Position numbers and translations under genes: made by a program
Shown: positions 12,784 through 53,150 of the stretch, piece by piece
Layout: every line of letters begins with the position of its first letter
How positions within the stretch are numbered: position 1 is the stretch's first letter
The notes under the pieces: model-generated
Seen by the model: only the letters and a program-made list of their open reading frames with translations
Databases searched by the model: none
Told to the model about the DNA's origin: nothing
Assembly: GCA_029953675.1 (NCBI GenBank)
Contig: JAMWBK010000005.1
Span: 868,001-932,000, forward strand
DNA length: 64,000 bases
From: Rhodosorus marinus CCMP1338
Lineage: Eukaryota > Plantae > Rhodophyta
Reading direction: 5' to 3'

Positions 12784-13281
12784 GCTGTTCTATTCTGTCA
12801 AAAGGGCCAACTTCCGTCAAGTACAAACCATCAGCTCGACGCGAAGAAACATTCGCTCTTCTTCGTCAAGACTACTCCCAGGGACAGTAGCACTGAAAGC
12901 TTCCGTGTCAAAAAACTTCAGGGGAAGCAGCAATAGTCTCTTAAACAATGCTTCTATCCAAGTCAGAGGTTCTCCTTCCCTCCCCTGCCTGGTTTATCCT
13001 GACGGCTCAGCAGGAGGGTGGATAGAGTGCAGTGAGCTCCGTCAAGAAGCTGGGTAGATGGTGATGCTGAATGCGTGTATTAACTTACCCTCGATTGACG
13101 TATAGATTCTGGTGCTTATGTATCTCTGGAAGAGCTTTGAGCGAGGGACTTTAACATCGATCTACGGCTACATGACGCTTCAAGCGCAGGACAGGGACTG
13201 ACGATCCTGAATCGGTGGTTTTGCCAAGTCAAGATCTAGCTCCTCTCTTCGACTTGTTGTATACTTTGAGTGTCACCGAGC

Positions 13282-15713
13282 ATGATGACTCTGCCTGTAT
13301 CTGTTCTGCTAGCGGTCCTCGTTCTCGTTATATACGGAGATTTTGTTAAAGGGGAGCTGCAATGGGGAACGTACAACCCCGGATCGATCTTCTCGGTGCG
13401 GGCGCGGGTGCCAGACTCACCGATGGTTGGCATCGCTTGGGCTCCGTCGAAGAAACAACAAGCTATCAGATCCGGTATTGGAGATGCCTCCGGCCCGACA
13501 TTCTTTCGGTATCACGACGGTGCATCGTTTGCGACTGAAATCATAACTGACGAAGAAGCTGGCGTCGTTGTCAATGCCACATGGGTCCACCTCGACAAGA
13601 AAGCGTGGGCTTTGAGGGTCGAAGGAACGTCCAAAACTCTGGACCGTTCGGAGCGAGATTTGAGTTTCTATGTTTATACGTCAATGGTGAACGACCACCC
13701 AAAGGAGGGCGAAGAGAGCACCGGAAAAGTTGAAGTAGAAATCGAAAGCGAAGAGTATGCCGCATTCGTGGCAAGCAAGAGCAAAATCGGACCTTTCCGT
13801 GTGGAGTTCAGAGAACCCGCCAGCGGCGCCGTGACTAGAGGTACACCTAGTTCTTCCCTCGAATCGGAAACGTTCGCCTCCTCAAAGAGAATTTCATCTA
13901 CTGTGCCCTTATTCAACCACCATTCTCATAAACGGCGCTCTACAGACAGATCCTCGAAGCATTCGCGACTTCAGGACGTTACGAATGATCTGTCGGTGTT
14001 TCACTTTCTCGGCCTGGAGGTTATGATTCCCAGTCGTTTTGAGATCTCCCTTCGACATTCCATACTCTCGTCGATGGTAAGAGTATATTCACGACTTTCA
14101 CGATGGCGAGGTGCATCGGATACCCGTCAATGCTGAAAGGTTGATCCTCTATCGTTTCTACCTACAAAAAGCCTACGGACTCTCAATCCAGAGGAGACAA
14201 GCGTGGACATCCCAAGGGATTCATTGCACTACCAGACCTTGAGGCCCAGAATAGCAACCTAGCAATTGTACAGCGATATCTTCGTACTCCTTTCCAGTTT
14301 GACGTGGTTTTTGAAAGCTCCGCAGCCGATGACGCGGTCTCCGAAGCGGTGGAGGCGCACAGAAGAAGCTTCGAGAGCAGGTTTCGTCATGTGTTCAATC
14401 TGGAGGAGTTCAGCGTGGCGCAGATTGAATTTGCCCAGATCACGCTCTCCAACCTGCTCGGTGGTTTTGGTTACTTCCACGGCCCGCTTACGATCAACTC
14501 TACAGACGCAAGACCGGGTGAGGATCGACTAAAAGCCTCTAGCGAGGCTTCGCTCTTATCAGCTACGCCGTCCCGCGAATCCTTTCCGCGCGGATTTCTT
14601 TGGGATGAGGGCTTTCACCAAATGCTTGTCCAGAAATGGGACCCGGAACTATCGAGGGAGGCCCTCAAATCCTGGTTGGCGACAATGGAACCAAGTGGGT
14701 GGATTCCACGCGAGCAAACTCGTGGTGCTGACGCGATAACGCGTTTTCCGCAGCATATTCAACACTACATGATCCAATCGCCGGACGTGGTGAACCCACC
14801 AACGCTCGTTATGCCAGTGAGGGCGTTGATGCTATCAGAACCGGTACAAGTGGATGGGAAAGGAGGGATTATACGCTCAGGATTCGTCAGCGATGCCTTC
14901 GAAAGGCTCTCAAAGCACGTGATGTTCTTGGCAATGTCACAAGCAGGAAAAGTAGAGAACACGTTCTACTGGAGGGGAAGGCAGGAGACCGATGGCGTAA
15001 TCCATACATTGGCGTCAGGGCTAGATGACTATCCACGTGCGAAGAACATAAGTGAAGCCGAAATGCATCTGGACCTTGCCTGCTGGATAGCATGGAGTCT
15101 TAAGAGCGTAGCCACTCTCGCACCGACACGGAAAGCTCAAGAAGCGGACATGCTCAGGGCCGCCGCGAATCAGATTACAACTACGCTTTTCGAAAAGCAC
15201 AGAGGACCAGGTTCATATGAGTTGCTTTGTGACCAAGGAGCCAATGGTTCTGCCTGCCATGAAGGCTATGTCACACTCTTTCCGATGATTCTTGGATTGG
15301 AAGATGCGTCGTCACCGCGATTGGGGTCTATTCTGCGGCTAGTCCGGGATGAGGATAGATTGTGGTCCAAAGGAGGTCTCAGGTCGCTGTCGAAACAGGA
15401 CCCGGAATACGGGAAAAACGACGGATACTGGACTGGTCCGGTATGGATGCCGATTAACTATCTTGTCCTGGCCTCGCTCAAGACAAAGTACAGCGTGGAA
15501 AATGGTCCATACAAGGAATTGGCGAAAGATACATACGAAAGGCTAAGAAAGACGATAGTTGGCAACGTCTATTCGGAGTATAAGAGAACTGGGACCGTAT
15601 GGGAACAGTATAATCCAGAAACTGGCGGAGGCCAACGTGGACGCGATTTCACGGGATGGACCTCGTTGGTGGTGCTGATCATGGCAGAGGAATACGCCGG
15701 GGTGATTGTCTGA
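13282..15713 (+). CDS. GCS1: Mannosyl-oligosaccharide glucosidase (glucosidase I, GH63)
   Basis: N-terminal membrane anchor followed by WGTYNPG. C-terminal GH63 motifs SATPSRESFPRGFLWDEGFHQ, GWIPREQ, TLASGLDDYPR, YWTGPVWMPINYL, VWEQYNPETGGGQRGRDFTGWTSLVVLIMAE. Intron(s) around 14020-14300. Confidence 0.95.
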
Positions 15714-15824: not shown

Positions 15825-17717
15825 TCAATCTGGACCGGCTGAGTGGGATCTCAATGTCGCACGACACTTTTCTAGAGAAATTTTGCCGTCGCTAACAAAG
15901 GATGAAAACGGTGGATCAATCGTGTCTTCGGCGAGGATCTCGAACGTCCCCAGTCCATGCGCTGTATCCGCTTCACCCTCGATCAGTGAAGCAAAAATGC
16001 TGAGATAACTCAGCATCAATCCAGAGTCGAACGTTGAGCTGACGATAACGCGAGCGGCGCTCGCTCCTTTCCGAATCAGGTCAACGGTAGGTACGAGCCC
16101 TCCAATAACGGTTGGCTTCACAACGTACGCGGCCAATCCGTCTTCCACCGAATGCTTCCACCACGTCTCGCTCTCAACAAGGTTTTCGTCCAGAGCGAAT
16201 CGGAGCCCTGTTCGGGCGTAGAACTGCGGCAGCTCCTCAGGGTCTTCCAGCGGCTCTTCGATGAACTCTATGAGATGAGGTCTTTCCAAACTCTTCCAGA
16301 AGCTCGTGGCCTCATCGAGCGTCCAGGAGCGATTTGCGTCTAGGCGTAGCCGGCTTCCGTGGTCCTCCAGTGCCTTGCACAAGAGGTTTACGTTACTTGC
16401 GTCATCTTCCAAGGAGCCGCCACCAACTTTCATCTTCATGACGGAGTATCCTTGTCCAACCAGCGATAGAGCGTACGCTGATGGATCGACTACTCTCGGA
16501 ACAACCGAGTTTATAAATACATGCGCTTTGGGCACTACCGACCAGCGAAGACGAAGAATCGTAGCCATCACTAAATCCAGCTCCGAGTCGACCTGAGCCG
16601 CAATCAGTTGCAGGGAGGCCATTTCCATAGCACACTGTACTGTTGGCGTTGAGCGAAGTCTGAGAAGCAGTTGAAAGGTTTGTGATTCACCCAGAACATC
16701 TTCGCACGCTTTGGAGACTTCAGCAACGTCCTCGAGCAGCGTTCCCTTGTGAAATCCGGGCAGCGGGGAAGCTTCTCCAACTCCATGCTTGGAGTCTTTG
16801 GCTTTAAGGATCACAACTAGCCCCTCTCTGTGATCGACAGTAGACCTTCCAGCGACGCTCATCTTCTTCCTCAGAGCCAGTGAGAAGCGTCGTTGCTCGA
16901 TTGTTTGAACGCAAGGAGTCGACATCGTCCTGAGAATTCGCTTGAATGTGACAGTAGTGCGCACAACCGCATCGATAGCTTGATGAAGACAGTTGTGACC
17001 AGCATCTGGAACAACTGCTGAAAAGTGTCTTTGCGATGCTCTTCGTGTGATGGCAACGTACTTCCGATCCTCTGAACCGCAGATCATCAGCGACGGTGGA
17101 CTTGCAGGCCCGAGAAGGAATTCCCAGAGGCTCGTCATTCGAGCTGGTGAGTAGGCGACCACAGCTTTCGACATGTTCCGTTGGGTGTTAACGCGTTTTA
17201 TTCTTCTGATCCAAAGCTGTTTGGATTCCTCGGAAAGACTTGAGCCCCAGAGGCCTGCCGAATACCAGCCGTGTAAGAACTGGTCGAAGTTGGCCTGTAT
17301 CTTCCTGGAGTATTCTAGATCGCGCTCCATTCGGTCAGATCTCTCGCTTCCTGTAGATGGTAGACCAGGATCGGAGCTGATCAGGATCAGATTCTCAACT
17401 AATCCATGCTCCACGCTTGCGGCCAAGCTTAGCGCAACTCGTCCTCCGAGGGAGTATCCCACAACGATGCAGGACCGAATCTCCAGATCATCGGCCGTCT
17501 CCCGCACCAATGCGGCGGCCTCTGCAACGTCCTCGACAGACACAGATGCTGATTCTCCGTGAAGCGGGAGATCAATCGCGACTACACGTTCTCCATCACC
17601 AATGCGACTAACAAACGCCTCGAAGATCGGCTCCTTGTCTCCGAGGAAGCCATGGAGAAGGAGCCAGACACCAGAAACAATCCGTCGATCGCCAGCTTCT
17701 GTAAAAGCAAGACTCAT
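15825..17717 (-). CDS. menH-menC: Fusion of MenH (SHCHC synthase, alpha/beta hydrolase) and MenC (o-succinylbenzoate synthase); single exon
   Basis: N-terminal half: LHGFLG, GYSLGG (nucleophile Ser), GSEDRKY (Asp), AGHN (His). C-terminal half has enolase-superfamily OSBS motifs GEASPLPG, KMKVG, RLDANRSW, IEEPL, ALDE, VVKPT, GLGT. Confidence 0.9.
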   Translation of the reverse strand: MSLAFTEAGDRRIVSGVWLLLHGFLGDKEPIFEAFVSRIGDGERVVAIDLPLHGESASVSVEDVAEAAALVRETADDLEIRSCIVVGYSLGGRVALSLAASVEHGLVENLILISSDPGLPSTGSERSDRMERDLEYSRKIQANFDQFLHGWYSAGLWGSSLSEESKQLWIRRIKRVNTQRNMSKAVVAYSPARMTSLWEFLLGPASPPSLMICGSEDRKYVAITRRASQRHFSAVVPDAGHNCLHQAIDAVVRTTVTFKRILRTMSTPCVQTIEQRRFSLALRKKMSVAGRSTVDHREGLVVILKAKDSKHGVGEASPLPGFHKGTLLEDVAEVSKACEDVLGESQTFQLLLRLRSTPTVQCAMEMASLQLIAAQVDSELDLVMATILRLRWSVVPKAHVFINSVVPRVVDPSAYALSLVGQGYSVMKMKVGGGSLEDDASNVNLLCKALEDHGSRLRLDANRSWTLDEATSFWKSLERPHLIEFIEEPLEDPEELPQFYARTGLRFALDENLVESETWWKHSVEDGLAAYVVKPTVIGGLVPTVDLIRKGASAARVIVSSTFDSGLMLSYLSIFASLIEGEADTAHGLGTFEILAEDTIDPPFSSFVSDGKISLEKCRATLRSHSAGPD

Positions 17718-18579: not shown

Positions 18580-20224
18580 TCATTCTTCTTCTGGTTCTTC
18601 AGCCGGCGGCTCTTTGTCAACAGTTGCGATGGTCCACTTGCTCTTCAGGATTTCGACAACCGCATTTCTTTGCAAGTTTGCGAAGACTTTGTCCCTAGCT
18701 GATTCCTCGTCAAGTTCCTAGGATATGTCAAAAAAAGCAGAGCGGACTAAGCCTCTGGTTCTAATAAATCGATCCGCTTTGGGGAAACACCTCTTCAGCA
18801 TACCTCCTTCAACTCTGCGCGGAGAAGATCAAGCTGTGCATCGACTTCCTCGTCCTCGATCGTCACGCCCTCCTCATCAGCGATCTGCTGAATCGCAAAT
18901 GACTTCATGAGCATCTTCTCAACGTTGCCTCGGGCATTCTTCGCGTACTTTTCGTAGTTCTCCTTGGTGATCATGCTCTGCACCTGCTCATCCGATGCTC
19001 CGCTCTGTTTGAAGTCCGACATCATTGCCGCGAACTTGCTCCTACTCTGCTGGTCGACCAAACTCTCCGGAAGCTCTACTTCTATAATGCCCGCGAGTTC
19101 ATCCTCCATGGCCTTCACCATGGCAGCCTATACAAGAGAAACTCACCAGGTTAGCTAAGGGGAACTCAAAAAAAAAAGCCAAGGCGGTGAACAAAAGCTG
19201 GCCGCATGCGTGGGTTGAGATGACGCACATCGTTGGCCTGATCAACTTCGAAACTCAAACGGCTCCTTAGGTCCTCACGGAGCTCGGCAAGGTCTTTCTT
19301 TCCAGCTGCAGTCAGAGCAAGCTCGTCATTAAGCTCGGGCAGCTTACGATGCCTAACTTCCAGAACCTCGACGTCAAAGATAGCCTTCAAACCTGAGAGC
19401 TCCTTCCTTGCAGTCTCGGGGAACTGAACGGGTACTTCCCTGGTCTCATTCGCTTTCGCTCCAACGAGACCCTCAACGAACCCGGGCATGAACTTTCCCT
19501 CCTCGAGAGTGATGTCAATCCCCTGACCCTCAGCAAAGTCCGGCAGCGGCTCTCCCTTTGATCCATCCTCCTCTTGATAAAAGCCCTGCATGTTGGCAGC
19601 GGCCTGGTCTCCCATTTCCAAGCCGACGTCCTCTTCGGTTGCTACATATGTCGCTTCTCTCCTGCGGAATTCTTCGAGGGCGTCTTCCAATAGGGACTCA
19701 TCAAAAGGTTCCTGCTCGACGGTGATCGATCTCTCTTTCCAGTCCTCACTGAACGTCGGGGTGGGCCACACGTCAACCTTGATCTTGTAAACAAACTCGT
19801 TCTTCTCTGAGAAATTGTTGATCAGCTCGTCAACGTCCGAGTCAAGGGAAGACTGACCAACCGCGCTGATTCCTTCAGCTTCCATTGCCTCCTTCGCAGA
19901 AGACTCTACCAACTGCTCAACAACACCGGCCGCTATCCTCTCCTTTCCAGCCGCATTGATAATCAGCTGCTTCGGGGCGCTTCCTTTTCTAAATCCAGGC
20001 ATGTGGGATTGCTTCACCAGCCCCTGCACATACTTATCATAGGCCTTCTTCGCGTCCTCCGCGGGAACGGTGATCTCCAGCCCAACCTGGGAACCAGGAA
20101 GAACCTCCTTCTTCACAATCACGGCCATCATCACCGTCGCAGCACGCCTCCTACTACATACCGCCTTCCGTTCCCCTAAACCAGACCCACCAACAACCTT
20201 ACCATTACCAAAAACGAACGCCAT
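18580..20224 (-). CDS. tig: Plastid trigger factor (chaperone/PPIase), 3 exons
   Basis: MAFV transit peptide, ribosome-binding signature MPGFRKGSAP, FKBP-like GKFMPGFVEGLVGAKANETREVPVQFP, and C-terminal domain (VELPESLVDQQ...). Last exon ELDEESARDKVF...EEE* ends at 18580. Confidence 0.93.
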
Positions 20225-22160
20225 CTCTCCAACCAAATCAAAAAGACACACACAGACACACACAAAACAAAAAAAAGAAGAAACCTAATAAACTCGTACA
20301 CGCTTCAGTGTCATCTACTCTACAGCTCCAACCTTATCTTCACGATTGAAAACACCCTTCCTACCACGACCACAAACAGCAAAGCCCCAACCCCCAATCC
20401 CCTCATCCAGTACCCTCTGCAAACCCCCAGCACCCCCGCCCACCCCCAAAACAATCAATCCCCTTCTCCTTCAGCAACCAAACCGACCAATTTCGATAAT
20501 CGAATTTCCAATACTCGACCACCCCCCCTCCCTTCAACCAAAAATTTCCTACCGTGCGGTAAATCCTTCCCAAAACATCCAAAAAAAAATTATTTGGGGA
20601 AATAGCCTATTGAAAACAATATTTCCAACCCCCGCCCCGTTTCTTTCTTTAAATCCATACTGGTCCAAAATATTTTCACTAATTTGTAACTGTTCAACAA
20701 ATGAGATTTTTCAATCTCACCAAATAGATTAAATCGAACTGGCCGGTGGCTACTGAATTTTCGATTTTTTGAGGGCATCGAAAGTAAAGGGGGGGGGTAC
20801 GCGTGTTCACTGCATAGGGTTTTTTTTGAGGAGAAATATAACGGGACAGACTGTCTGTTCAGACCGTTAGTTATATAGATTTGATAAATTATTTTCAGCA
20901 TCTGTCATAAAATAAGATACTGGACGGGCAATCTTCAATCATAATAGAGTTCCTAGTCCAATTAGGGAAGATAATGTTTTGTTCTTGACTTAATAAACTT
21001 TTATTTTAATTTTATTCAGTATCATGTCTGGGTGGGGACAAGGGTGGGTGGATGGATTCGTTATGTTGACTGCACATATTTATTTTATTGTGATATTTCA
21101 AAGTCATGTTGACTGTACGAGGTCGCAGGTCACGGCGGTCATAGCGTATATCCGTCACGCGTCTCGTTTAATCAATAATTTTATAGAGTAAACGGATGAC
21201 GGATTCCTGAGTCTACGCTTCGCAACCCCCCAACCCCCCTAACCAAATTGTCCAGGGAGTAAGTTTTTAATATTAATGTAAATTTTCATCGATATTGAAA
21301 GTCTCGGGCACTTCTTAGGCCTTAATATATTAGGATATTTGTTTCGTTTATCCGGTATCAGTAGCATACCGTCCCCTTCAGACTCTCGGACTGGGCTGAG
21401 CTCTAAGGGCTGGATGGCTGTGGCATTTGAGCGGGCATTGATGATGGCAATAAGCCGCATCTGTGTAACTTCGCTTCGTTTCCAACTGCGCTGAAAGCTG
21501 GCAACCTGAAGATTGAAGTGTTGTGAGACTCAAGTATGCAAGCACCCCAAAACAAAGTCTCATCCCGGAACAGATCAAGGAAGCCTTTAAAAAAACACGG
21601 AGATAGAACTAGCTGGCTAAGCGCACCGGAATAACAAATGCAGCTGGTTGTTTTCCATCGCTTGACTAGGACAGAATACATCCGAATGCGCTGACCAACA
21701 CACACCCCAGAACTAGTACCGGTACTACAACCGCAGCCAAAGGCTCAGGTGGAAGGGAAGAGATTGTTTGCCCGACCACGAGACCCAGACCCAGTCAAAC
21801 CACGGGCAAATCCAAAACTTGGGGCGAAAATAAATATCGACTGGCCTCACAAGGACTGGCCTACAACAGACGTCCACCTTTCCATCGGAAGGCTTCCAAG
21901 GTGAGGAGTCTCAGCGCTCTGCCCAAGGAGCTCAAATCTCTGCTTAGGAAGAAAATCTCGTGGCCAAAATTCCGATCAATAGGTTTGGCTCTGATGAAAG
22001 TTTTGGGGGGGAGGTCCGGGCTTGATACAGTAGATGTAGGAATCGATCCGTTTGACTCATCAGAGAGGTGCGTAGTCAATGGGTTTGTGCTGAACAACTA
22101 GCTCTGGTGTTGAGTTTCCTGGCCGGGGGGGGTTGGGGAGTTGTTTTCTTTTGAGAAACT

Positions 22161-48525: not shown

Positions 48526-49265
48526 ATGGGGTCACGTGGAGGGTTTCGTGGAAGAGGCCGAGGACGAGGGTCTAGATTGAGGCCTCCTAGTCCCATCAGT
48601 AGAGCTCTACAAAACCTTACCAATGAAGATGGGAAGGGAGCGCTTATGTTGGATGAGGCTGGCAGGTTTCCGATTTTGAAGGAAGGGTTTACCTCGAGGT
48701 GGGATTCTCCGGAGACTCCAGTGGACCTATCTGAAATGAATCCACCGCTAAGGGTTCGTCCAATTTTGTATCTTCTAGGGCCACCCCATTGTCCTCTAGG
48801 GAAAGAGATATGCTCATGTCGAACGTTCGACTTATCAGTAGCTACAAGAAACTGTACGGAGTAGTCAGGGAGAAGACTGCGGGGACGAGGCCCTATCGGT
48901 ATCGTGATCGAAAACGCGATCTAAAGGATCGAAGAGAAAAGGGGAACGACGATAAAGACTGGTCTTTGAGGGAAGACCAGATCTTCCTAAGCGTGCCGGA
49001 GAACGACGCCAAGGAGTTCAATGAGCCAGAGCAGAAGCGGTTAAAGATTGAAGCGGAGAGTAGCCCTCAGGAAGTTGCAAACGAGGATCCGCTGCAAGTT
49101 GATTCCCAAGAAGTGATCGAGAGGAATGTACCCGATGAGGGTGTAGACCGAAGGCTTGATGCAGTTGAAGTGGATGAGGACGACGATTACGGACGCGAGG
49201 AACACTTTGACGACGACGATGACGACTATCATCACCAGAGCGGGGACGATGAGGCCGTGTTGTAA
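48526..49265 (+). CDS. Probable RNA polymerase III subunit RPC7/C31, 2 exons
   Basis: N-terminal MGSRGGFRGRGRGRG and acidic C-terminus DEDDDYGREEHFDDDDDDY...GDDEAVL resemble the C31 tail pattern. A phase-2 intron at about 48699-48778 joins the two ORFs. Confidence 0.6.
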
Positions 49266-49352: not shown

Positions 49353-50519
49353 CTAACAGATGAACGCCTTCTCCGAATTAATCTCACTGCATTCAAGGCA
49401 AGGATTTTGCGCGAACTTCTTCTCCACCATCGCCGCGCGTACTTTCGTCACTGTCTCAATGTATGAACCGTCCGGATTCTCCTTCAAGACTGTCACCAGC
49501 GTATGCGTGAGGGCGCCAAATGCGTCACCTCCTGGTGGACGCACATCAGCAGATGTCTCGTGTGCTTGGCATCCGGTAATCAGGATACCCTTGTCAGGAC
49601 TAAGGGGATCTGGTTTCGGAGGTGCTGAGGTGGTAGGGGTATGCGCCGCCTGTGTCGCAGGAGCGGAGTCACCTCCCACGGCCGATGCTACCTGGCCTAG
49701 TAGGCTGCCGAATCCACCACCGCCACCGCTCGAGGGTGGTTCGGCGGGAGCACCTCCACCAGAAAGAGCTCCGACAAGGCTCGACATAGCACCTCCAGTG
49801 CCACCGGAGCCTCCAATTCCCAGAATTGACAGAAACTGGCTAGCCTCTGGACCAAAGATCGATCCCAATGAACTGCGTATGTCCCTAGTTCCAACCGTTC
49901 GCCCGAGTTTCTGCGAAAGGATGCTGGCCACGAGATCTGGTTTGAGCTCGCGGCTCTTAACCCCGACTTCCTCGGGGTCGATATCTCGAGATCCGCCTAG
50001 GAAGGAAATCAAGGAAGACGGCTCCGGCAGGTGCTGACCTGTTCCTCCAGCCTTTGGTCCATCGATTTGCACCGCCGAATGATCCAGCATAGAACCACTG
50101 TGACAGCAATCAGAAATGAATGTGAAATCAACTCCGTCCGCAATTTGAGAAACGATCGCCTTCAAATCATCGTCGACCAGCAGGTTCATATCCGTAGGGC
50201 AGATCGCTTCATCCTTGTGATCATCCTCTTGATCGTCACCATCGGACGCTACCTGAGTTCCATGCCCCGAAAAATGGAACACCAGGACATCGCCAGGTTG
50301 CGATCCACTGCACATCGTCGTCAGCGCCGATTTGATGTTTGCTCCAGTCGGGGAGGTATAAGAATCATCCGTATCAATCAACACGGTGATATCATCATCC
50401 GAGAATCCCTTGTACTCCGTCAGGAAACCCTTGATCATGAACGCATCGTTCACACACCCGGCCAATTCAGCCTGCGAACCAGGGTAATTACACCCAACCA
50501 GAACAGCTTTTTTTGACAT
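49353..50519 (-). CDS. Metacaspase with type II architecture (no prodomain, long p20-p10 linker), intronless
   Basis: KKAVLVGCNYPGS..LAGCVND, HFSGHG (His86), DMNLLVDDD, ISDCCHSG (Cys139), a ~165-residue linker, GILITGCQAHETSAD, GALT, and C-terminal AFIC. Confidence 0.95.
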   Translation of the reverse strand: MSKKAVLVGCNYPGSQAELAGCVNDAFMIKGFLTEYKGFSDDDITVLIDTDDSYTSPTGANIKSALTTMCSGSQPGDVLVFHFSGHGTQVASDGDDQEDDHKDEAICPTDMNLLVDDDLKAIVSQIADGVDFTFISDCCHSGSMLDHSAVQIDGPKAGGTGQHLPEPSSLISFLGGSRDIDPEEVGVKSRELKPDLVASILSQKLGRTVGTRDIRSSLGSIFGPEASQFLSILGIGGSGGTGGAMSSLVGALSGGGAPAEPPSSGGGGGFGSLLGQVASAVGGDSAPATQAAHTPTTSAPPKPDPLSPDKGILITGCQAHETSADVRPPGGDAFGALTHTLVTVLKENPDGSYIETVTKVRAAMVEKKFAQNPCLECSEINSEKAFIC

Positions 50520-52388: not shown

Positions 52389-53150
52389 TCATTTTGCTTC
52401 CACATCCCCTTTGATGGATTGAAGCATCTGAAGGATTTGGTTAAGAAGCTTCTTGTCCTCGGCTTGCTGGCTTAGCTTCGTCTCCTCAAGCTGTAGCTTC
52501 TTCTCCTCTATTTCCCTCTGCTTTCTACGATCCTCGATCTCCGCTTGGAGTCGGATTTCGTCCAGGTCTATTTTCTTTCGCTGCATCTCGTTCGCGGCGC
52601 TGTCCTTCTCCTTTAAATAAGATACAAACTGGTTGAGCGACTGCATATCTCGCACGCGCTTAGCGTCTGGGTCATCAGGGTCACCAATGTATCCACGTTT
52701 TCGGTCGAAACCACCAAACGAATCTCTCTTGCCATCTCGCCTCTCTTCTTTCGCCATGGCAAACGTGTCCTTCCTGTTCACAATATCGCTGAGAAGGTGC
52801 TCTCTGAGCTCGAACACCTCACCTGCACCTCTCCTCAAGTTGTCCAGGTCATGTTTCTTCAGCCAGCGCTCAAGGATAAGAAACCTGTCCCTGGCCATTC
52901 GCGAATCCACTTTCCATGGGAAAGAGCCGCTGTTGTTCAGTGCGTCCGTCACCTCCTCCCATGTCTCGTTGACCTTTCCGTGGGGAGCAGCGTACGGCTG
53001 CCGAGCCCCAACCTCCCGCAGTAATATTACATCCAAATTAGGGTTGAACCGCTTCCTCGACTTTCGTTCGCTGTCGGGACCACTACTGCCCCTACCGTCC
53101 CGGTCACCATTAACGCCCTCTCCATCGATCACCTCAATAGGCTGCTCCAT
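52389..53150 (-). CDS. Myb/SANT-like DNA-binding domain protein with C-terminal coiled coil
   Basis: RKRFNPNLDVILLREV...PYAAPHGKVNETWEEVTDALN...VDSRMARDRFLIL resembles Myb/SANT-like (trihelix-type) domains. Basic and coiled-coil tail (EIEEKKLQLEETKL). 253-aa ATG ORF. Confidence 0.7.
   Translation of the reverse strand: MEQPIEVIDGEGVNGDRDGRGSSGPDSERKSRKRFNPNLDVILLREVGARQPYAAPHGKVNETWEEVTDALNNSGSFPWKVDSRMARDRFLILERWLKKHDLDNLRRGAGEVFELREHLLSDIVNRKDTFAMAKEERRDGKRDSFGGFDRKRGYIGDPDDPDAKRVRDMQSLNQFVSYLKEKDSAANEMQRKKIDLDEIRLQAEIEDRRKQREIEEKKLQLEETKLSQQAEDKKLLNQILQMLQSIKGDVEAK

Follow-up and report, generated by a model that had tools for sequence, protein, structure and literature searches.

The metacaspase gene was located at positions 49,353–50,519 on the minus strand of the window, by which we mean the whole 64-kb stretch of Rhodosorus contig JAMWBK010000005.1 (assembly GCA_029953675.1) that was analysed. 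The open reading frame is real and as listed: a complete coding sequence in a single exon, ending with a TAG stop codon (49,353–49,355, minus strand), and the NCBI gene model on this contig gives the identical single-exon protein of 388 aa. The coding sequence is supported by the ORF list, the NCBI model and the matches to Peptidase_C14 and AtMC4 described below. An in-frame stop lies two codons 5' of the ATG, so that an N-terminal extension is impossible in this exon and, with the p20 domain beginning at residue 1, the protein has no prodomain, as the earlier note on this DNA had observed. The same start methionine was found in the product of a Rhodosorus marinus transcript. The nearest relative of the protein was a Rhodosorus marinus protein of 386 aa from the MMETSP0315 transcriptome (taxid 101924; Rhodophyta, Stylonematophyceae), with 91% identity. 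The window protein itself was encoded once in the public collection, on this 3.19-Mb contig. No significant tandem repeats were detected in the gene by a tandem-repeat search.

The next gene downstream (52,389–53,150; 253 aa) belonged to a cluster of at least 90% identity with the R. marinus UniRef entry A0A7S0BTB8. Among the other neighbours, Pfam scans identified a MutS homologue, a pyruvate kinase, a Cpn60/TCP-1 protein, a U1 zinc-finger protein, a GH63 glucosidase, a MenC/alpha-beta-hydrolase fusion and the trigger factor (tig). All of these are unremarkable for the nuclear genome of a eukaryote with plastids, and the GC content was uniform along the 64 kb. Two neighbours, pebA and tig, had been named previously; tig was recovered, but pebA did not appear in the Pfam scans of the window ORFs of at least 130 aa; it could be interrupted by introns, or its ORF could be shorter than this limit. 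The match of the metacaspase to R. marinus, the clustering of its neighbour and the Rhodosorus contig confirm the red-algal origin of the sequence. That the gene might be a contaminant, or the contig a chimera of green- and red-algal DNA, is extremely improbable, because the gene and its neighbour both match R. marinus, the surrounding genes are ordinary nuclear ones, the GC content is even and the contig is 3.19 Mb long; nothing in favour of contamination or chimerism was found in the contig, the neighbours or the GC content of the window.

A single Peptidase_C14 domain (PF00656) was recognized by Pfam over residues 3–380 (5e-34). In a phmmer search of the PDB, the best matches were the two type II enzymes AtMC4 (6e-60, 207 bits) and AtMC9 (5e-52), and type I metacaspases followed at a large distance (Yca1, 6e-34; Candida glabrata MCA1, 3e-33; T. 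brucei MCA2, 3e-29). The AlphaFold2 (AF2) model, built with 91 homologues, had a mean pLDDT of 81 and a pTM of 0.80. When it was compared with the PDB by Foldseek, type II structures matched at about 1e-29 (6W8R/8A53; AtMC4 3e-29, AtMC9 about 1e-28) and type I structures at about 1e-15.

Three parts of the protein could be delimited. The p20 catalytic domain (residues 1–153; 50,061–50,519, minus strand) aligned without gaps to residues 1–153 of AtMC4 (HMMER), so that the catalytic His86 and Cys139 carry identical numbers in the two proteins. Column conservation and pLDDT also supported this domain; the pLDDT was mostly 93–98, falling to 76 at residues 91–100 and to 88 at residues 141–150. Its key codons, all on the minus strand, are those of C22 (50,454–50,456), S84 (50,268–50,270), H86 (50,262–50,264), D137 (50,109–50,111) and C139 (50,103–50,105). 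The p10 domain (residues 307–388; 49,356–49,601, minus strand), which contains S323, D325 and the C-terminal FIC, aligned to AtMC4 334–418, terminal FIC included (HMMER), with a pLDDT of 82–97. Between them, the domain limits of the HMMER alignment to AtMC4 leave a linker of 153 aa (residues 154–306; 49,602–50,060, minus strand). Linkers of type II metacaspases measure 161 ± 33 aa, compared with about 30 aa in type I (Choi & Berges 2013), and the linker of the window protein falls within the type II range. The short motifs by which the protein had first been recognized were all present where they had been placed: DMNLLVDDD at residues 110–118, KSRELKPDLVASILSQKLG at 188–206, IRSSLGSIFG at 214–223 and FIC at 386–388.

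The protein thus combines the C14 fold and the His/Cys dyad with a p20 domain N-terminal to p10, a long plant-like linker with a basic P1 residue at the autocleavage column and, by sequence, the acidic S1 pocket residues S84, D137, S323 and D325. Type I membership is contradicted by the length of the linker, the lack of a prodomain and the weaker scores to Yca1, CgMCA1 and TbMCA2, and type III membership by the order of the domains, since in type III p10 precedes p20. Architecture, sequence, predicted fold and a tree rooted on fungal type I sequences (see below) all bear out the type II identity first proposed for it. The gene is intact, and its product is a type II metacaspase of the ordinary red-algal kind. 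On the strength of the sequence, the structural model and the analogy with characterized enzymes, the product of this Rhodosorus gene is very probably a functional type II metacaspase (MEROPS C14B, MCA-II).

The catalytic equipment was strongly conserved. The His86/Cys139 dyad and the S1 pocket were invariant or nearly so: in the columns of the S1 pocket, D137, S323 and D325 were found in all of the 120 homologues and S84 in all but two, S323 and D325 corresponding to S350 and D352 of AtMC4. Cys22, which had already been singled out as conserved, was invariant in all homologues whose N-terminus was present. The acidic L5 loop, a feature of the Ca2+-dependent AtMC4-8 that the Ca2+-independent AtMC9 lacks, is kept between D93 and E104 (D93, D95, D96, E98, D99, D100, D103, E104).

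The earlier note had placed Lys225, the self-cleavage residue of AtMC4, in the sequence SSPK and had concluded that the window protein lacks the canonical lysine. For a check of the numbering, the AtMC4 sequence was rebuilt from the residue-by-residue print-out of the PDB. In the rebuilt sequence, K225 sits in IHAKDK↓SLPLQTL, whereas the lysine of SSPK is K265. This numbering fits S84, D137, R180, R190, K210, H221, K223, K225, K237, K267, S350 and D352 of Zhu et al. 2020, and it is the only one compatible with their H221 and K223. The placement of K225 in SSPK was therefore wrong. In a HMMER pairwise alignment and in MAFFT alignments of 22 and 121 sequences, the column of AtMC4 K225 contained Arg190 of the window protein, in GVKSR↓ELKPDLVASIL. 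Its codon, CGC, lies at 49,950–49,952 (minus strand). According to the alignments, Arg190 is predicted to serve as P1 both in autoinhibition and in the first autocleavage. The column was basic in all 120 homologues (MAFFT), with Arg in 109 and Lys in 11; in the column of the SSPK lysine, Lys occurred in just 50 of the 120. In the Chlamydomonas enzyme CrMCA-II, the residue of the K225 column is also Arg190, which has been named as the conserved autocleavage site (Zou et al. 2023). At the level of the sequences, this match is an independent check on the equivalence of K225 and R190. Since K225 aligns with an R190 that is always basic, the canonical cleavage site is present in the window protein, and the reported absence came from an error of numbering.

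Arg190 lies in a type II-specific conserved linker block (residues 181–232; 49,824–49,979, minus strand) seen in both MAFFT alignments and modelled with a pLDDT of 81–94 over residues 191–230. The AF2 model showed short strands beside R190 and helices at residues 194–205 and 211–225. The block corresponds to the beta8-beta9-alpha5 autoinhibitory segment of AtMC4 (Zhu et al. 2020), and two motifs within it are kept among the homologues: (K/R)xLxxxxLxxxLxxxxG, which flanks R190, and IRxxLxxxFG.

The second half of the linker had a distinct composition. A basic cluster (K193, K204, R207, R212, R215) was followed by a stretch of 86 residues free of Lys and Arg (residues 216–301; 49,617–49,874, minus strand; basic-residue list, composition and pLDDT), the next basic residue after R215 being K302. 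From about residue 233, the linker was rich in Gly, Ser, Ala and Pro, and the composition thus agreed with the stretch described after EASQF; the block pLDDT over residues 231–300 was 45–56, and the region is predicted to be disordered. In AtMC4, the C-terminal half of the linker contains the secondary cleavage sites K237 and K267 (Zhu et al. 2020). K237 aligned to S202 of the window protein, with K204 two residues further on. The region of K265 and K267, SSPKVKKF in land plants, corresponded to FGPEASQFLS (222–231), and there was no basic residue at 225–232. The HMMER and MAFFT alignments differed at this place, K265 being aligned to E225 in one and to F229 in the other, and neither gave a basic residue. 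The disagreement has no bearing on K225. The two secondary cuts of AtMC4 are thus without a direct counterpart, because the window linker runs for 86 residues free of Lys and Arg.

The residue that had been mistaken for the counterpart of K225 is Gln228 (codon CAG, 49,836–49,838, minus strand; alignments). Position 228 is Lys in the R. marinus orthologue (CAG differs from the Lys codon AAG by a single base), and a basic residue, Lys or Arg, occupies this position or the next one in many red and green homologues. Judging by the sequences compared, red algae in general lack the secondary sites of the C-terminal half of the linker; the absence is not specific to this gene. The idea that the 86-residue stretch is special to the window gene was rejected: by length of the longest run free of Lys and Arg, the gene ranked 14th of 121, other red algae having longer runs, up to 197 residues in Chondrus.

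A protein that had lost its canonical linker lysine would have to be activated by another route. The absence of any basic residue from FGPEASQFLS, where land plants have SSPKVKKF and the R. marinus orthologue has Lys228, and the genuine secondary cleavage at AtMC4 K267 in that very segment, are the observations on which such a reading can draw. It is refuted for the primary site by the alignment of K225 with R190 in a column without exception basic, and the Lys column of SSPK is itself variable. Moreover, in the K237A/K267A double mutant of AtMC4, the cut at K225 persists and the activity on substrate is higher at low Ca2+, so that missing secondary sites do not predict an inactive enzyme. Activation by a wholly different route is accordingly very improbable. 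What survives of the claim that the enzyme is activated differently is limited to the secondary sites of linker-C, the C-terminal half of the linker: the counterparts of K237 and K267 are absent, and the primary site is kept.

For the functional protease that we prefer, the following sequence of events may be proposed by analogy with AtMC4 and CrMCA-II. In the zymogen, the linker would run across the active site, with the side chain of Arg190 held in the acidic S1 pocket. Cleavage after Arg190 would be induced by rising Ca2+, giving fragments of about 20.0 kDa (residues 1–190) and 19.6 kDa (191–388), and would release an endopeptidase specific for Arg and Lys. Further trimming at K193, K204, R207, R212, R215 or K302 might follow, although this is speculation.

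Proteolytic and non-proteolytic roles of a metacaspase are not mutually exclusive. It could be argued that the window protein has a mainly non-proteolytic role, for instance as a membrane-associated stress protector like CrMCA-II, with the linker as a flexible or condensate-forming spacer. A precedent exists, as the study of CrMCA-II reportedly described protease-independent thermoprotection by a type II metacaspase, and the long, disordered Gly/Ser-rich stretch, visible in both the AF2 pLDDT and the composition, would be in keeping with such a spacer. However, the catalytic residues, the S1 pocket and the cleavage site are strictly conserved, which argues for selection on the protease function, and we regard a mainly non-proteolytic role as unlikely.

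Homologues were found well beyond Rhodosorus. The survey of other Rhodophyta that had been suggested yielded type II homologues in six red-algal classes: the named sequences came from Stylonematophyceae (Rhodosorus, Purpureofilum), Bangiophyceae (Pyropia), Florideophyceae (Chondrus, Gracilaria, Gracilariopsis, Agarophyton), Porphyridiophyceae (Porphyridium), Rhodellophyceae (Rhodella) and Compsopogonophyceae (Compsopogon). No sequence from Cyanidiophyceae was among the named matches, and no metacaspase matches were obtained in Cyanidioschyzon or Galdieria by van Creveld et al. Homologues were also present in many green algae and land plants, and in the choanoflagellates Monosiga brevicollis (on a 348-kb genomic scaffold), Salpingoeca urceolata and S. 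kvevrii, with 45% identity.

A neighbour-joining tree was computed from the p20 and p10 domains of 40 sequences (234 columns, 200 bootstraps), with four complete fungal type I cores and Yca1 fragments as the outgroup. A search for type I outgroups with the Yca1 p20 fragment had yielded little besides incomplete fungal pieces, and the comparison made by the tree is thus one of type II proteins with type I enzymes from fungi alone. AtMC4, AtMC9, CrMCA-II and the red-algal proteins formed one clan, and all other sequences of the tree were separated from fungal type I with a bootstrap of 100%; with this sole outgroup, the window protein was placed in the type II clan. The red algae appeared as a single, weakly supported clade (56%), within which the Stylonematophyceae (100%) and the group of Bangiophyceae and Florideophyceae (83%) were recovered, and the branching order roughly resembled the red-algal species tree. 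The deep branches and the placement of the choanoflagellates had backbone values of 6–50%, and one Salpingoeca sequence attached beside the reds.

On the basis of these sequences, vertical inheritance within Rhodophyta is the most likely history of the family. The occurrence in six red classes and the species-like topology of the reds fit an origin of type II metacaspases no later than the ancestor of red and green lineages. The red-algal genes might instead derive from an ancient lateral transfer, either from a green alga, in the reverse direction or from a third lineage that also supplied the choanoflagellates. The patchy distribution, with Cyanidiophyceae missing from the named matches and from the results of van Creveld et al., the close homologues in choanoflagellates, which are unrelated to algae, and the low bootstrap values of the deep branches could all be explained in this way. 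On the other hand, the reds are nested in no green subgroup and make up one clade of six classes in an order resembling that of the species, and the window gene lies among ordinary Rhodosorus nuclear genes of similar GC content. A lateral origin is therefore rather unlikely, and vertical inheritance within the red algae is retained in what follows.

The distribution bears on statements made repeatedly in the literature. Type II metacaspases have been described as confined to plants and green algae, with none in red algae (Choi & Berges 2013), and as specific to Chloroplastida (Zou et al. 2023), so that a literature restricting them to the green lineage does exist, as the earlier note had said. 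The novelty that the note had attached to a red-algal member was nevertheless overstated. Vercammen et al. 2007 had stated in one line that green plants, glaucophytes and rhodophytes all have both metacaspase types, and database entries already bear names such as "metacaspase type II, MCP1" (Chondrus crispus), "metacaspase type II MCP1" (Gracilaria domingensis), "Metacaspase-4" (Gracilariopsis chorda), "Metacaspase-7" (Porphyridium purpureum) and "caspase-like protein" (Pyropia). Transcriptome papers on Pyropia report metacaspases induced by heat, desiccation and infection, the enzymes being given no type assignment. Literature searches on Archaeplastida, red algae and Monosiga or choanoflagellates found no analysis of red-algal type II enzymes beyond the line of Vercammen et al. 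2007 and these Pyropia transcriptomes. The occurrence of type II metacaspases in red algae is thus real, but public databases and some of the papers already record it.

The window gene has very little significance in itself, as it encodes a standard protein already predicted in NCBI and UniRef. As a by-product, its analysis corrects the repeated claim of green-lineage exclusivity, with type II enzymes in six red-algal classes and in choanoflagellates; the presence of red-algal and choanoflagellate members in public sequence data argues against an origin specific to the green lineage. The choanoflagellate copies also fit poorly with a purely plastid-linked origin of type II. The red-algal enzymes offer simpler unicellular models for the mechanism of autoinhibition. 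The case further illustrates how one wrongly placed residue number, that of K225, can create an apparent anomaly.

We tentatively propose, as a possible scenario, that the type II metacaspases were not an invention of green plants and date back at least to the red/green ancestor, or earlier if the choanoflagellate copies are considered. In the red algae, the Lys-rich helices of linker-C would have been replaced by a disordered spacer with neither Lys nor Arg, leaving only the cut at Arg190 available. The second-stage control of the AtMC4 type would then be absent, or would have moved to the K204–R215 cluster and K302.

Among the characterized systems, AtMC4 (AtMCA-IIa; PDB 6W8R/6W8S/6W8T) is the best match of the window protein in both sequence and fold. 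The two proteins share the lack of a prodomain, the H86/C139 dyad, the S1 pocket, the acidic L5, the C-terminal FIC and the basic P1 residue, K225 in one and R190 in the other, followed by a conserved strand and helices. They differ by the nature of P1 (Arg in the window protein, Lys in AtMC4) and in both halves of the linker. Linker-N measures 41 aa in the window protein as compared to 76 aa in AtMC4, and the region containing R180, R190 and K210 of AtMC4 is absent from it. Linker-C is disordered, Gly/Ser-rich and free of Lys and Arg, whereas in AtMC4 it forms a Lys-rich helical bundle.

CrMCA-II of Chlamydomonas reinhardtii has the same architecture, with R190 at the same number and in the same column, and 44% identity over the full length. 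Its linker-C is rich in Gly and Ala and, as in the window protein, poor in basic residues. The known membrane association and dimer-linked activation concern this green-algal enzyme only. The proteins of Chondrus, Gracilaria, Gracilariopsis, Porphyridium and Pyropia belong to the same family and the same clade. They have Arg at the K225 column and, like the window protein, a Gly/Ser-rich linker-C poor in Lys and Arg; their identity with it was 37–54% over the part aligned by BLASTP (59–100% of the query). The florideophyte members differ by much longer, repeat-containing linkers and by the absence of the Arg of the "IR" motif (R215 in the window protein).

AtMC9 (AtMCA-IIf; PDB 8A53, 9N3D-F) has the type II architecture and was the second match after AtMC4, in sequence and in fold. 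Its C29, in the numbering of the aligned AtMC9 chain, corresponds to C22 of the window protein. The linker of AtMC9 is short, its L5 has no acidic cluster and the enzyme is independent of Ca2+, whereas the window protein keeps both the acidic loop and the long linker. The type I metacaspases (yeast Yca1, T. brucei MCA2 and fungal Peptidase C14 proteins) share the C14 fold, the dyad and the acidic S1 pocket, but their p20-p10 linker is short and devoid of the type II block, and many of them have an N-terminal prodomain. Their scores to the window protein are much weaker (6e-34 for Yca1 and 3e-29 for MCA2), and a bootstrap of 100% separates them from the type II clan.

Full-length type II-like metacaspases are encoded by choanoflagellates, heterotrophs related to animals. 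Four such homologues lying outside the window, one from Monosiga brevicollis (P0012), two from Salpingoeca urceolata (P0008 and P0062) and one from S. kvevrii (P0024), showed 44–46% identity to the red-algal protein of the window. In these proteins the linker was long, and an arginine was conserved in the alignment column of Lys225, the autocleavage site of AtMC4. In the tree, the choanoflagellate sequences fell within the type II clan, their position inside it being without resolution. No paper treating choanoflagellate type II-like metacaspases was found in the literature searched.

The linkers of the Florideophyceae type II metacaspases, including Chondrus crispus MCP1 (P0089), were greatly enlarged and carried peptides of the SSNPLASMMGGGxSTT type repeated in tandem. 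The Chondrus linker extended for 272 aa beyond the cleavage site, and runs free of lysine and arginine reached up to 197 residues in the florideophyte linkers. In the window protein, position 228 is a glutamine (codon CAG, positions 49,836–49,838 in the metacaspase gene, minus strand), whereas the 91%-identical product of a R. marinus transcript has a lysine there, the two codons being one base apart. Many red and green homologues possess a lysine or arginine at this position or the next one. It is possible that position 228 marks a secondary cleavage site.

The metacaspase gene (49,353–50,519, minus strand) is convergent with a small gene on the plus strand (48,646–49,265; NCBI model of 179 aa, ORF 48,789–49,265), the product of which has a very acidic C-terminus. 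The stop codons of the pair are no more than 87 bp apart, which implies that the 3' ends of both genes must overlap or be very short. Two long antisense ORFs on the plus strand, of 225 aa (49,360–50,037) and 161 aa (50,031–50,516), overlap the metacaspase coding sequence. The likeliest reading is that both arose by chance, since neither matched a known family and the gene on the opposite strand is well supported.

Elsewhere in the window, the N-terminal (13,270–14,136) and C-terminal (14,304–15,713) domains of a GH63 mannosyl-oligosaccharide glucosidase occupied consecutive plus-strand ORFs 167 bp apart, an arrangement that suggests either a single gene interrupted by a short intron or a frameshift. 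The earlier note had named tig and pebA as neighbours. The former corresponded to a minus-strand ORF (19,166–20,263) with the bacterial-type trigger factor domains Trigger_N and FKBP_C, presumably a nuclear gene with a plastid-targeted product; Pfam scans of the window ORFs of at least 130 aa did not recover pebA. A 630-aa minus-strand ORF (15,825–17,717) fuses an alpha/beta-hydrolase (MenH-like) domain to MenC/enolase-superfamily domains, a layout similar to part of the fused PHYLLO-type genes for phylloquinone synthesis in eukaryotes with plastids.
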